DNA of 63,941 nt, filler included, from Reticulomyxa filosa (Eukaryota; Protista; Foraminifera), in assembly GCA_000512085.1 (NCBI GenBank). It is 21 parts of 21 records of this genome, joined end to end, with 100 filler letters (N's around TTAATTAATTAA, not from the genome) between each part and the next. Parts side by side here need not be neighbours in the genome. Positions count along the whole stretch, not along the records: positions 1 to 7,087 come from ASPP01018412.1; 20 more parts are not named here. One strand, 5' to 3'. The notes beneath the pieces are model-generated. The model worked only from the letters and a program-made list of their open reading frames with translations, ran no database searches and was not told the DNA's origin. A program made the position numbers and the translations under genes. Of this stretch, positions 1 to 6,708 are shown piece by piece (the stretch's first letter is position 1; the number at the start of each line of letters is the position of its first letter).

Positions 1-119
1 TGATGGTAAGTTAATCGCTAATCTTAGAGGATTCGGTGCCTCATTCCATAAGCTAGCTGGTTGCTTTGCCTCATCTGATGGTAAGTTAATCGCTAATCTT
101 AGAGGATTCGGTGCCTCAT
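1..119. repeat. 75-bp coding tandem repeat (about 1.6 copies visible)
   Basis: tgatggtaagttaatcgctaatcttagaggattcggtgcctcat occurs at 1 and again at 76. Confidence 0.9.
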
Positions 120-1726: not shown

Positions 1727-2615
1727 TTATAGTTTTAGTTGTCTCTTTATAAGGTTAGAAGAAGGTTTTATAACAAGATTATGCTCTTTTTCATCAATAT
1801 TGACATTAAGAGCTGGCCAAATTGCTTTAATTTTTCTTAATTGTATTTTAAAAGATCTTTTAAATTCATATCTGCCTCTGTAGTCATTCTTATAACCTGT
1901 GCCAAACTGATGCATTAGACTTTTCAATGGTATATACACTTCTTCAATCATATAACTAATCCTGTATGTAAGCCAAAAATATATATCGAGCGCAAAAGAG
2001 CTGTACCTTAGTAACTTAATAATCCTCCAATCAACAGGGACAGGGTAGTTTAATAAATCTTCATAAAATTTTCACTTAATTTAACTACTGAATTAAAAAA
2101 ACTTGTTTGCTTAAGATTTAATGGATCCCACCAGATAGCAGATGAGTCTGCTATCTGCATATTTTTTCTAATAAATTCTCCTCTTACTTCATCAAAGTAC
2201 GTGCAGGATATTGTTGAAGAGAGCAGTTTTTTCATCTGGTCTTTAACTCTTGGGATTGTACCCCAACGTCCTCCTGTTGGGATAATATCCATCGTTTTCA
2301 TAAGTTCATAAAAACTGTTTCCTAACCAGATCTCTCTGCTTTTTTTAGTTATAACTTCAGTTGCAAGCCAGCAAAGTATTATTCGTGGTATACCCCAAAT
2401 GGAAGGCCAATACCTTTTTTACTTATTATTGAGAGTTGGAATATTCCATTAATCCTAGTGAATTCTGTCTCTTTTATTTTACTATGTGGTAATGTAGCTT
2501 GGATTAGATTTCTGCCAACGAATCCTAGAGAATTTGCTTTGATAGTATCGTTATACTCATACTCAGAAGCTTTATCTGCAATCTTTATTAAATTAAGCTC
2601 TTTACTTGAGGTCAT
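1727..2615 (-). CDS. repA: Plasmid replication initiator, RepA_C (PF04796-like) family; two apparent 1-nt homopolymer frameshifts (about 2395 and 2065)
   Basis: The three ORF pieces plus manually bridged frames give LGFVGRNLIQATLPHS..FTRING..GLPFG/IPRIILCWLATEV..PTGGRWGTIPRVKDQM..SENF/YEDLLNYPVPVDW..SSFALDIYFWLTYR..QFG.GY, the diagnostic motif series of this family. Confidence 0.85.
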
Positions 2616-2781: not shown

Positions 2782-2818
2782 TGCTCTACAAGCACGAAGA
2801 TTGCGTGCTTGTAGAGCA
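2782..2818. promoter_or_regulatory. Perfect 15-bp inverted repeat (hairpin) upstream of repA
   Basis: tgctctacaagcacg-aagattg-cgtgcttgtagagca. Confidence 0.8.
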
Positions 2819-2853
2819 GTACCATCGAGTAATTATGCGTAAAATATCGGGTA

Positions 2854-2932
2854 CTTCCAAGCTGTCTGTGCGGCAGTGAACTGAAGAACAAATGAAACAT
2901 AACGTCTTACTTCAAAGCTGCCTGTGCGGCAG
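2854..2932 (-). CRISPR. Orphan type I-F CRISPR mini-array/remnant (one full and one 5'-truncated repeat, 28-nt spacer; possible third diverged repeat at about 2800-2824)
   Basis: The minus strand reads CTGCCGCACAGGCAGCTTTGAAG (2932-2910), spacer TAAGACGTTATGTTTCATTTGTTCTTCA, then GTTCACTGCCGCACAGACAGCTTGGAAG (2881-2854, 28 nt). This matches the I-F/Csy4 consensus GTTCACTGCCGyryAGGCAGCTwAGAAA. No cas genes are in the visible contig. Confidence 0.85.
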
Positions 2933-3566
2933 GTTTAGTGAGTTTGCGAATATTTTATTTTTAAAATTACTCAGTGAAGGTAATGAGAAATCTTGGTGGA
3001 GTGATATAAAGTCGCAATCGAATGATTATATTATAAGTTATATAAATAGCTATGTTATAGGTCAGATACAGAATAAATATGGAGGGGATGTTTTTACGCC
3101 AGTTTTGATAAAGTCACCGCAAACGCTCAGGCATATAATAGATGAGATAGATCCATTGGTTTTATCAAGTATAGACAGCGATATTAAAGGAGATGCATTT
3201 GAATACTTTTTAGAAAAGACGACCTCGACAGAGAACGATTTAGGAGAATATTTTACTCCGCGCAATGTAGTAAAGACAATAATTAATTTAGTTGATCCAA
3301 AATTCAAAGAGACTGTATATGACCCATTTTGTGGAACAGGAGGATTTTTAACCGAAAGCTTTAATTATATTAAGGAGAACAATATAATTGAAGGAGAAGA
3401 AGACTTAAAAAGATTAAAGCAAGAGACAATATACGGAAGAGAGGTAACAGCGACAGCCCGAATAGCGAAGATGAATATGATTTTGCATGGAGATGGTCAT
3501 GCTGGGATACAACAAATTAACACATTGAGCAATCCTGACTATATAGAGAAGAAAGGAGGCAAATGG
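2931..3566 (+). pseudogene. hsdM: Type I restriction-modification N6-adenine methyltransferase (HsdM) internal fragment
   Basis: RFSEFANILFLK, GDAFEYFL, LGEYFTPR, motif I VYDPFCGTGGFL and ARIAKMNMILHGDG are present. The native N-terminus and catalytic NPPF motif are missing. It is fused to a CRISPR repeat at the 5' side and a transposase at the 3' side. Confidence 0.88.
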
Positions 3567-4176
3567 ATATTTGTAAAATTGCAAATAAGTTATATCAATT
3601 TACTGCCATAGATGATTGTACAAGATACAAAGTTATAGCTTTATATAGTACTCGTAGTGCAGATAAGACACTAGATTTTTTAGACCAAGTTATCAAGAGA
3701 ATGCCTTTTATAATACAACGTATTCAAACTGATAGAGGGCAGGAGTTTTTTGCTTATAACGTGCAAGAAAAATTAAAAGAATATAAAATTAAATTTAGAC
3801 CTATAAAACCAGCTTCTCCACACTTGAATGGTAAGGTAGAACGTACCCAAAGAACTAATTTAGACGAGTTGTAAGTAGTATCGATATTAAGTACTCTCAT
3901 TTAATGGACAAGCTTCATACTTGGGAAAAATATTATAATAAAGGACGACCCCATAGTGCTTTGCAAGGGAAAACTCCTTGGGAAAAGTACAAAGAACTAG
4001 AACCTCAGATTCCTACTATAGAAGAAGTGCATCTTAACTATGAGGTATCACAAGAAAATTTTGTACCACAAAGCTATAATGTTCACAAAAATATACAGGA
4101 TATAAAAAGGGGCAAATCATATAACTAATCACGAGTTGCTCTGACATGTCAATTGAAATGATCTTTGTAAATCACA
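3560..4176 (+). mobile_element. IS481-family insertion sequence, 5'-truncated, transposase frameshifted near 3873
   Basis: rve core QMDICKI..YQFTAIDDCTR..IQTDRGQEF..PHLNGKVERTQRT then YYNKGRPHSALQGKTP. The HTH region is absent. A plausible right end ...tgtaaatcACA lies at 4176 (IS481 ends are TGT...ACA). Confidence 0.85.
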
Positions 4177-4247: not shown

Positions 4248-4943
4248 CTATTCTTCTATCCACGGGATAGTCTCTATGCTTTTATTCACTGCTATTTCTA
4301 AAATTTTCTTTGTTCTGTTAAGAAACTCTTCATATCGTTCTTCTAGAGGACTTTTATCTGTAGACGAAAGAGTATAACCGCTATCCGGCAAGAGTTGTAT
4401 CACATATTTGTGATAAAAAAAGCATGCTGTTAAAGCTCTATCAAAAGAAGGAGTATTAGGTTGATTTACACCCATCCTGTTTTTGAGCTCTTCATCAGTT
4501 GTAGAATGAGCTAATACACAATCACGAAAAGGTTTGAGCTCTTTAGTTATATACTTGTTCCACTCTTCTTTCGTGCATTTTAGTTTATCTAAAAGTGCCT
4601 TTTCAAATTTATCATGTTTGTTCTCGCTAATATGTTTTCTCCAATGTACTACTTCGAGTTTTTTAGGATTAGAATTACAATAAAACATTTGCACAAAGTT
4701 TAAAATAATTGACGCGTATAGAGCATTTTGGATACGAATCCATACATCACGGAACTCCAACATTTCTTCTCTATCACGGGGTATTTTGCATATATCAGTT
4801 GCTTCGATGTTGAATATATTAGTTGTTTTGAATATATCAGTTAATGTTCTGCAAATTGCTATGTTTTTTACCACAAGGAAAATTTTCTCTACTACTTGCA
4901 CTAGTTGTTTTTGCCGTAGTTGTTCAATATTGTTATCAGGCAT
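4248..4943 (-). CDS. HEPN-domain (AbiU2-like) putative RNase/toxin
   Basis: Rx5H motif RDCVLAH (4526-4506), preceded by W..IQNALYASIILNFVQMF and followed by P.FDRAL..FFY. The ATG at 4943 overlaps the upstream stop (ATGCCTGA). Confidence 0.55.
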   Translation of the reverse strand: MPDNNIEQLRQKQLVQVVEKIFLVVKNIAICRTLTDIFKTTNIFNIEATDICKIPRDREEMLEFRDVWIRIQNALYASIILNFVQMFYCNSNPKKLEVVHWRKHISENKHDKFEKALLDKLKCTKEEWNKYITKELKPFRDCVLAHSTTDEELKNRMGVNQPNTPSFDRALTACFFYHKYVIQLLPDSGYTLSSTDKSPLEERYEEFLNRTKKILEIAVNKSIETIPWIEE

Positions 4944-6708
4944 GATTATTTGATGATTTGGTTTTAGGATATAATATAAATTTATAATATACTTCTTCAA
5001 GTATATTCAGCTCATTCTCATCTATATCTTGAAATATTTTTATTTTCGCCCGTTGTGAGAATTTTCCCTGATTTTGTTCAAGGAAGCGAATTAATAATGA
5101 TATTTTAGGTTTTATATCTAAATTATTTAATTGTACAGGCTCATCTGTTGGTAAGCTTATTGGTAATCCTAGAGGGTTTGGTGCCTCACTCCATACACTA
5201 GTTGGCTGTACAGGCTCATCCGAAGGCAAGCTTATTGGTAATCCTAGAGGGTTTGGTGCCTCATTCCATACACTAGTTGGCTGTACCGGCTCATCTGAAG
5301 GCAAGCTGGTAGGTAATTTTGAAGTTTCTTTCTGTTTTTTTTGTATAATGCATTTGTTTTCTGTTGCATTATTCCCTGCATCAAAATTTACATCGTCACA
5401 ACTTATAGTCCATCCTTTTATCTGTTTCTTTAGATCTTTTTTTAATTCCTTAGAGTTATCAGGTATGTACACTTTATTAATTGTGAAAGTATGCCCAATT
5501 TCATCTACTATTACATCTTCTGATCCAGTCTTGATTTTAGTATATTTAATCTCGTATTCAACATCATTATATTTTCCAACGGCTATTACTATAGATTTTC
5601 TAACTTCTAAATTGCGGAGCCTTGCAACTAAAGCCCCTTCTAACTCTCTCTTCCCAACACATACGCCTCTGCCAATTAATAAATTGAAATCCATATTCTT
5701 GCAATCGAATGTCGTACGCCTGCCACCTATAACAATCTCTCCTGATTTTCTTACGACATGCAAGTTTTCTATGTGCCTTTTCAAATCTTCTGCAGTGCTG
5801 AATGCTAGAAGCCTATTCACTATAATAAGATGCTTATTTTCATTTTGATATATGTTGGCACTATTTTTTCCATTTAACTCACTAAGCTCTGGCGGTAAAC
5901 CAACAAGCTTAGCATAATATACGCTATATTGTAGAGATGAAATTTTCACTTCTGCCATATAAATAGTATTTGGATTTTTTAATAAGTCCTTGATAGATTT
6001 TACACTAAATGGCTTTAATTCTTGAAATCTTTCAAATAATGATTTGTGATAATTTGATAGCTGAACACTTGCCTTGAGATAATTATCATATTGATCCTTA
6101 ACGGGTTGGCCATCAATAAAACATGATGTATAGGCTTGATTAATGAGTTTTAGCTCATTAGCATTAAACTCTCGATTTATTGACGGTGCGAGATCTGGAT
6201 GATAAAATTTAGCGAATGCTTGATACACTGCTTTTATTTCTTTTATTGTAGCACTTGGCTTAACTCGCATATAATCATAACATGTTTGGCTCTTCTGTAA
6301 CAAGCCGTAAAACCTCTCTCGAAAAGAGATCGCATCAGCTTCAGCTGATGCGGGAAGATGAATTGGAGCACATTCTCCTATATAAGGCTCATCAAAGTCC
6401 AAATTGTCGCAATTAATGAATGACTTGCTTGATGAGTCTATGTATGGCTGATTATTTTTCGAAAAGGATATGCCGATCCCAGATAAAATGCTTTTTATTG
6501 CTTCGCTATTACTAGGTAAATTTACCTTATCTACAAATACGGATATTGTGTTGCCGTTGTAATCTATATGATTCTTAGAAGTGAAAGAAAATTTTGTTCT
6601 TAAATATATTGTATATAAAACATCATTAATTTCTATCTCGGCTATCAATGCATACCCGTAAACATGCATCTTTAAGTTTTTTATTTTCTCTAAAATTGAT
6701 GAAAGCAT
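4936..6708 (-). CDS. 590-aa multidomain protein: internal J-domain, three copies of an unknown domain, Pro-rich 25-aa repeats, Fic-family-like C-terminal tail
   Basis: J-domain YDYMRVKPSATIKEIKAVYQAFAKFYHPD (HPD at 6201-6193). Repeats LPSDEPVQPTSVWNEAPNPLGLPIS. Tail LLIRFLEQNQGKFSQRAK. Confidence 0.75.
   Translation of the reverse strand: MLSSILEKIKNLKMHVYGYALIAEIEINDVLYTIYLRTKFSFTSKNHIDYNGNTISVFVDKVNLPSNSEAIKSILSGIGISFSKNNQPYIDSSSKSFINCDNLDFDEPYIGECAPIHLPASAEADAISFRERFYGLLQKSQTCYDYMRVKPSATIKEIKAVYQAFAKFYHPDLAPSINREFNANELKLINQAYTSCFIDGQPVKDQYDNYLKASVQLSNYHKSLFERFQELKPFSVKSIKDLLKNPNTIYMAEVKISSLQYSVYYAKLVGLPPELSELNGKNSANIYQNENKHLIIVNRLLAFSTAEDLKRHIENLHVVRKSGEIVIGGRRTTFDCKNMDFNLLIGRGVCVGKRELEGALVARLRNLEVRKSIVIAVGKYNDVEYEIKYTKIKTGSEDVIVDEIGHTFTINKVYIPDNSKELKKDLKKQIKGWTISCDDVNFDAGNNATENKCIIQKKQKETSKLPTSLPSDEPVQPTSVWNEAPNPLGLPISLPSDEPVQPTSVWSEAPNPLGLPISLPTDEPVQLNNLDIKPKISLLIRFLEQNQGKFSQRAKIKIFQDIDENELNILEEVYYKFILYPKTKSSNNHA
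5132..5307. repeat. 75-bp coding tandem repeat, about 2.3 copies
   Basis: aagcttattggtaatcctagagggtttggtgcctca..ccatacactagttggctgtac repeats with a 75-nt period. Confidence 0.9.

Follow-up and report, generated by a model that had tools for sequence, protein, structure and literature searches.

Orphan and degenerate CRISPR arrays are common on plasmids, as documented in a survey (PMC9071438) and in a review of CRISPR in mobile elements (PMC11656645), and plasmid arrays often aim at other plasmids (PMC9071438). Racrs, solitary repeat units carried by viruses and plasmids (PMC10651486), and the CreA genes and regulatory mini-arrays of type I-F are further small repeat-bearing units; in an Acinetobacter regulatory case, 17 of 20 nt pair with a CC-flanked site (PMC10097628, PMC10120712, PMC9458426). 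In the type I-Fv model, a spacer made 6 nt shorter no longer supported interference, with complexes still being formed (PMC4937334). The locus described here is a repeat-spacer-repeat unit upstream of a repA gene in the Reticulomyxa filosa assembly (GCA_000512085.1). An earlier note had read it as an orphan type I-F mini-array and had proposed that it serves as a crRNA mimic or regulator, that it couples Csy4 cleavage to the processing of repA mRNA or, as a fallback, that it is the decayed trailer end of a deleted array. It is the fallback that has held up, given a truncated first repeat, degeneracy that rises 3'-ward, a spacer shared with other remnants and wrecked genes on both sides; we consider the unit to be probably a non-functional relic, namely the trailer-side end of the same bacterium's type I-Fv array, scattered by recombination.

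The window (the whole stretch of DNA that was analysed, 63,941 nucleotides, with a GC content of 33.7%) carries the repeats on contig C18412, one of 50,809 contigs in a 101.9-Mb assembly that appears to combine a eukaryotic host with an AT-rich bacterium. The unit and its neighbours are as follows.

2932-2910, minus strand: remnant of repeat 1, matching the 3' part of the assembly's 28-nt type I-F repeat consensus at 23 of 23 positions
2909-2882, minus strand: spacer of 28 nt between repeats 1 and 2
2881-2854, minus strand: repeat 2, full 28 nt, matching the assembly consensus at 25 of 28 positions
2822-2853, minus strand: second-spacer register, a unique stretch of ~30-32 nt after repeat 2
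2782-2818, either strand: palindrome with perfect 15-bp arms and a 7-nt loop, between the repeats and repA
1727-2615, minus strand: repA (RepA_C family), in three reading frames with two frameshifts
2933-3611 (ORF 2892-3611), plus strand: fragment of an N6-adenine methylase, type IIG/HsdM-like (N6_Mtase, 103 bits)
3563-4128, plus strand: IS transposase remnants (rve, rve_3; two ORFs) that cut the 3' end of the methylase fragment

That two I-F repeats lie on the minus strand at these positions, as the earlier note had described, is confirmed both by sequence and by the Rfam CRISPR-DR4 model, on which repeat 1 scores 26.5 bits (E 0.017) and repeat 2 29.7 bits (E 0.0017), both short of the model's gathering score (35), which the repeat consensus of the assembly itself, GTTAACTGCCGCACAGGCAGCTTTGAAG, exceeds with 38.6 bits. 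Within 3 mismatches, this consensus occurs 8 times in the 101.9-Mb assembly versus 0 times for a reversed control pattern, and the repeats are thus no chance occurrence. Repeat 1 retains its 5-bp stem (CTGCC/GGCAG), 5-nt loop and the 8-nt 5'-handle part, so that the intact Csy4 hairpin reported for it is real, as are the 28-nt length of the spacer, the absence of any cas gene from the window and the distance of about 240 nt to repA (repeat 2 ends 239 nt upstream of the ATG at 2615). The first 5 nt of repeat 1 have been replaced, with positions 2937-2933 unlike the repeat and a junction at 2932/2933. Repeat 2, for which one stem mismatch had been given, does have that mismatch (G17A) and differs from the consensus at three positions in total, the others being A4C and, in the handle, T24G. 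Predicted hairpin folding energies are -8.6 kcal/mol for the consensus, -9.4 kcal/mol for repeat 1 and -2.2 kcal/mol for repeat 2; the latter folds worse than most shuffles, and its canonical stem is not in the centroid structure.

The repeat-spacer period in the window is 56 nt, as opposed to the ~60 nt (32-nt spacers) expected for a type I-F array and to the 60-62 nt seen in the canonical array of contig C19500 and in metagenomic arrays with the same repeat core. Beyond repeat 2, matches elsewhere to the stretch at 2822-2853 were sought and none were found, and a third degenerate repeat at 2821-2794, although in register, matches at 11 of 15 positions, which is not significant (p ~0.15). Along the minus strand, the repeats decay from 0 mismatches in repeat 1 through 3 in repeat 2 to a possible third copy that is barely recognisable, and this 3'-ward rise in degeneracy fits the pattern usual for the trailer end of an array. 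The palindrome at 2782-2818 has a left arm weakly similar to the repeat core (11/15; p ~0.15 alone, not significant); it was considered as a repeated element and rejected, being unique in the assembly, and likewise rejected as a classical terminator, having no T-run.

The label "orphan" is accurate for the contig and wrong for the assembly, where a search for cas genes and further repeats located a cas operon on contig C2453. This operon comprises cas3 (HD and helicase domains) and genes for Cas7fv (NF040577, 427 bits), Cas5fv (PF20158, 212 bits) and Cas6f/Csy4 (TIGR02563, 126 bits), followed by a leader and a single repeat; Cas1 was seen only as a fragment, on the 768-nt contig C16553. Judged by sequence, the C2453 operon is an intact-looking type I-Fv (I-F2) system with the same repeat as the window unit, and the repeats in the window are shown at this level to belong to that resident system. 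Contig C19500 carries the same cas6f end and leader, here followed by three repeats with a period of 60 nt and by a fourth that an IS has cut. More repeats are found at one other site of C19500 and on two further contigs, C29446 and C37079, the latter plasmid-like, with parA and a 5'-truncated repA. The arrays of the assembly are thus tiny (1-3 spacers), cut by IS and scattered over 5 contigs, with 8 full repeats in total. The two versions of the I-Fv locus end (C2453 1891-8150 and C19500 5084-6437) are 99.9% identical in their shared part and differ in what follows cas6f and leader, i.e., a single repeat in one and three repeats plus the IS-cut fourth in the other, which suggests two copies or two strain variants. 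On the minus strand of C19500 at 209-236 lies a degenerate repeat of terminal type with a GTTAAC palindrome at both ends; its hairpin (-6.5 kcal/mol) is longer than that of the normal repeat.

The exact 23-nt repeat core was found in 4 metagenome contigs, within ordinary arrays with unrelated spacers, and had 0 matches in the genome contigs database and 0 in viral contigs. These metagenome arrays have near-identical repeats that start with GTTGAC and share the 23-nt core, 32-34-nt spacers and AT-rich contigs (31-36% GC); given the same core in ordinary arrays, the unusual TTTGAAG handle is a natural variant. As for the relationships of the bacterium's proteins, the nearest plasmid RepA is that of Rickettsiales bacterium Ac37b (46%), the ParA of another contig is nearest to Piscirickettsia plasmids (41.5%), and Cas7fv is 65-70% identical to that of many unrelated Proteobacteria.

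Both sides of the unit are occupied by damaged genes. The methylase ORF takes its start codon (ATG, 2892) from inside the spacer, and its frame continues across repeat 1; the fragment aligns with a paralogue on contig C11106 from the codon spanning 2931-2933, exactly where repeat 1 ends, and repeat 1 is therefore the edge of a junction between two fragments. At the C11106 locus, a separate ORF of 136 aa with an HSDR_N nuclease domain stands upstream of the methylase ORF, and its counterpart is missing in the window. This paralogous restriction-modification locus (C11106 3101-5754, minus strand; HSDR_N nuclease, N6_Mtase/Eco57I, Methylase_S) is itself in several ORFs, which suggests that this family of defence genes is decaying as well. 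On the other side, the identification of a repA gene stands as regards the RepA_C family and fails as regards an intact gene, as the frame is split in three by frameshifts at a G run near 2390 and at an A run near 2075, the second being a 1-nt deletion compared with the C37079 copy; both sit in short homopolymer runs, where an error of the assembly could have produced them. The repA 3' parts of the window and C37079 are ~95% identical, which marks the two as related replicons. Nothing was found in favour of Csy4-coupled processing of repA mRNA, which is unsupported because repA is broken and its co-transcription with the repeats is only hypothetical.

Further genes of the contig were recorded along with these. 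On the minus strand at 691-1630 there are two overlapping ORFs (143 and 195 aa), rich in Lys, Glu and Ala and with 14-residue (42-nt) tandem repeats, which probably represent one gene broken by a frameshift; C37079 (5335-6348) encodes a homologue of 337 aa. A 590-aa DnaJ-domain protein (31 bits; 4936-6708, minus strand) contains 25-residue (75-nt) proline-rich tandem repeats at 5119-5340, and this repeat type recurs at window 1-119, the start of the contig, and in a 174-aa ORF of C37079. Finally, a 250-aa ORF at 4248-5000 (minus strand) gives a sub-threshold match to HEPN AbiU2 (16.6 bits; cut-off 26.8) and may be the remnant of a gene of abortive-infection type.

The spacer itself recurs in the assembly. 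The search of the assembly with the spacer, which the earlier note had called for, returned copies beside repeats on three other contigs, so that four copies are known.

C18412 (window), 2882-2909: 28 nt, reference orientation
C37079, 1199-1230: 32 nt, reverse complement relative to the flanking repeats, 26 of 27 core positions shared
C29446, 401-425: 25 nt, window orientation, followed by a badly degenerate repeat
C19500, 237-257: 21 nt, orientation as on C37079, followed by the degenerate repeat of terminal type

The window spacer agrees with that of C37079 at 26 of 28 positions, and the C29446 copy has diverged from it (about 20/26); each of the six possible pairings of these copies aligns better than 1000 shuffles (p<=0.002), as the assembly's other spacers do not. 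Differences in length sit at A or T runs and at a tandem 7-mer that duplicates the repeat's 3' end, such that the "short spacers" are explained by small deletions in an ancestor of 32 nt. An old spacer at the trailer end would be expected to be shared by all remnants, as this one is. A looser genome-wide search with the spacer core gave 81 matches versus 114 for the reversed control, with nothing beyond the three known copies, and the loci, when compared with one another beyond their repeats on the downstream side, showed no homology. The family has two copies in each orientation relative to the repeats, and this occurrence in both orientations is beyond simple decay; the presence of the family beside repeats at four loci could, moreover, reflect selection and not common descent. 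The flip might be accounted for by integration in the flipped orientation or by template switching at palindromic repeats; inversion between the 5-bp stems was rejected, as it predicts swapped flanks, which are not seen. The sole core mismatch between the window and C37079 spacers creates the ATG at 2892 of the methylase ORF, probably by coincidence. Directly after the degenerate second repeat of C29446 (359-297, minus strand), there is a Shine-Dalgarno-like GGAG and an ORF of 20 codons, whose peptide is lysine-rich and then hydrophobic and recalls the small toxin ORFs that accompany CreA genes; no matching target was found.

Taken as a relic, the unit would have originated when the trailer-side end of the I-Fv array was severed from its leader and joined to the methylase fragment; it would then have been transferred onto the plasmid-like replicon, by recombination or IS activity, and would still be decaying there, with a truncated restriction-methylase gene on one side and a frameshifted repA on the other, on an IS-scrambled replicon. 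The short spacer would, on this account, be the product of small deletions and not of design. If read-through transcription is present, Cas6f could bind and cut at repeat 1; repeat 2, in contrast, would offer no sound 3' hairpin, and as a normal crRNA needs Cas6f at its 3' hairpin, maturation there is doubtful and a normal crRNA would probably not be formed. A guide of 28 nt would at best bind, given the loss of I-Fv interference on 6-nt shortening (PMC4937334).

Among the other readings, a Racr-like decoy, in which repeat 1 RNA made from a multicopy plasmid ties up the Cas6f and Cas7fv of the I-Fv system and so shields the plasmid, is unlikely, even though it can draw on several features of the locus. 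The contig is plasmid-like (RepA_C), and repeat 1 has by sequence and predicted fold a hairpin that Cas6f could bind; the perfect hairpin and 8-nt handle would suffice for a decoy RNA, and the cas6f of the assembly looks intact, so that processing would be possible in principle. Repeat 1, however, stops at a junction within a gene wreck, and what lies upstream of it is the antisense of the methylase fragment. An array leader was sought in the window by comparison with the leader of C19500 and C2453, and the one resemblance, on a TA-rich 14-mer, was not significant (p ~0.05); promoter-like sites numbered 2 versus 2.3 expected by chance; and a search of sequencing runs returned two "synthetic metagenome" contig sets with 6% of words and no RNA run containing the sequence. 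A Racr would also be expected to stand alone and to be conserved among related mobile elements. The window's unit is not solitary, and comparison of its RepA with 1.84 billion representatives gave no relative above 49% identity. The proposed search for the repeat-repA arrangement near RepA_C homologues found no I-F repeats at five loci (four loci of three relatives and the Rickettsiales bacterium Ac37b plasmid), in all of which no more than about 75 nt separate repA from the end of the gene upstream. With relatives that have no repeats and a repA with two frameshifts, the locus also lacks the functional, conserved repA that a repA leader or attenuator implies. No recognisable acr neighbourhood was found, and the nearly empty arrays of the resident system leave little immunity to escape.

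A related reading, and one we regard as decidedly improbable, is that repeat 1 or the whole short-spacer unit acts as a decoy for Cas6f and Cas7fv of a minimal I-Fv system in an intracellular symbiont, or that transcripts of the spacer, which two related replicons carry in opposite orientations, pair as crRNA and anti-crRNA and so cancel each other out. If true, such a decoy or pairing would give plasmids a form of counter-defence that has yet to be described for I-Fv.

It is very improbable that the unit is an active plasmid mini-array engaged in conflict between replicons, its crRNA targeting C37079 sequence, or the reverse. Plasmid arrays do aim at other plasmids, the two replicons are related through their repA 3' parts, and the window spacer does match C37079 nearly perfectly. 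This flipped copy is, however, the only near-perfect match, it lies within an array remnant, and its flank is CA rather than the CC PAM; in the reverse case, the C37079 spacer meets a GA flank in the window and seed mismatches at positions 1-2. The defective hairpin of repeat 2 and the loss of I-Fv interference with a spacer 6 nt shorter (PMC4937334) speak against activity. The protospacer search that had been proposed (spacer plus 3 nt of flank on each side) gave only chance-level matches among PLSDB plasmids and INPHARED phages (E >= 0.4), and when the whole upstream region was compared with plasmids, the repeat alone produced matches, all of them in other I-F arrays.

We give equally little credence to an assembly artefact, i.e., a chimera joined through the repeat or a mixture of strain variants, with the frameshifts and short spacer as errors. 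The heavy fragmentation into 50,809 contigs, the two versions of the cas6f-leader-array junction and the indels at homopolymer runs would all be consistent with it, and the fragmented assembly may mix strain or replicon variants. A join mediated by the repeat, however, still requires a repeat beside the methylase fragment; repeat 2 and the spacer have private substitutions, beyond indels; and the homologous unit on C29446 backs a real ancestor.

Least credible is a CreA/CreR-type regulator, in which Cascade, guided by the short spacer to a CC-flanked site with a partial match, would repress the promoter of a toxin, cas or repA gene without cleavage, since, for all that the repeat/short spacer/degenerate repeat layout resembles CreA and the regulatory mini-arrays (PMC10097628, PMC10120712) and that I-Fv Cascade assembles on shortened crRNAs (PMC4937334), the best CC-flanked partial match in the window and the four cas/array contigs was 12/17 versus a shuffled null of 11.6 +/- 0.8, the unit lies neither inside nor beside the cas operon (which is on C2453), the C29446 spacer copy has diverged, and mini-arrays are rare in I-F2 (0.04 of 33 loci; PMC10120712). 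A CC-flanked partial match is the feature by which CreA-type guides are defined (PMC10097628, PMC10120712). The broader proposal of a crRNA mimic or regulator has thus found no support, with a weak repeat 2 hairpin, no leader, promoters at chance level and no CC-flanked target.

As a relic, the unit is a further instance of array erosion and recombination scatter in an IS-rich, pseudogene-rich symbiont, which is useful for annotation, and it advises caution, in that cas-less repeat pairs on plasmids are not all RNA devices. The assembly presents an apparently intact minimal I-Fv operon alongside almost empty, fragmented arrays, and the one spacer family found in both orientations at four remnants could aid the study of array rearrangement.

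Set against the described systems feature by feature, the unit shows none of the CreA-type features tested; of the Racr features it has the hairpin only, and of those of a type I-F array it has the repeat sequence and hairpin family and cognate cas genes in the genome, without the leader and the regular period. With the CreA genes of type I-F CreTA and regulatory mini-arrays (PMC10097628, PMC10120712, PMC9458426) it shares a short spacer between a good and a degenerate repeat; theirs, however, are inside cas loci and have spacers that pair with a nearby CC-flanked site, whereas the unit in the window is on a non-cas contig. Repeat 1 has in common with Racrs such as RacrIF1 (PMC10651486) its repeat-like form, its location on a mobile element and an intact hairpin of Cas6f type; Racrs are solitary, with a strong promoter of their own, and often near acr genes, whereas the window holds part of a repeat-spacer-repeat remnant for which no promoter above chance, acr context or conservation was found. 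The resident system differs from the I-Fv system of Shewanella putrefaciens CN-32 (PMC4937334) in a repeat handle variant that ends in TTTGAAG, in a cas3 without an adjacent Cas2 fusion, in having cas1 as a fragment only and in its IS-broken arrays of 1-3 spacers; it resembles that system in its set of Cas3, Cas7fv, Cas5fv and Cas6f with no large subunit, and in the 28-nt repeats and 32-nt spacers of its canonical array. Compared with orphan plasmid arrays, the unit is unusual in being cut at one end by a gene fragment, in a repeat 2 without a hairpin and in a spacer that is a shortened copy from the cell's other remnants and matches no foreign element; it is like them in its few repeats, in having no adjacent cas genes, in its plasmid-like replicon and in repeats that match a cas system elsewhere in the cell.
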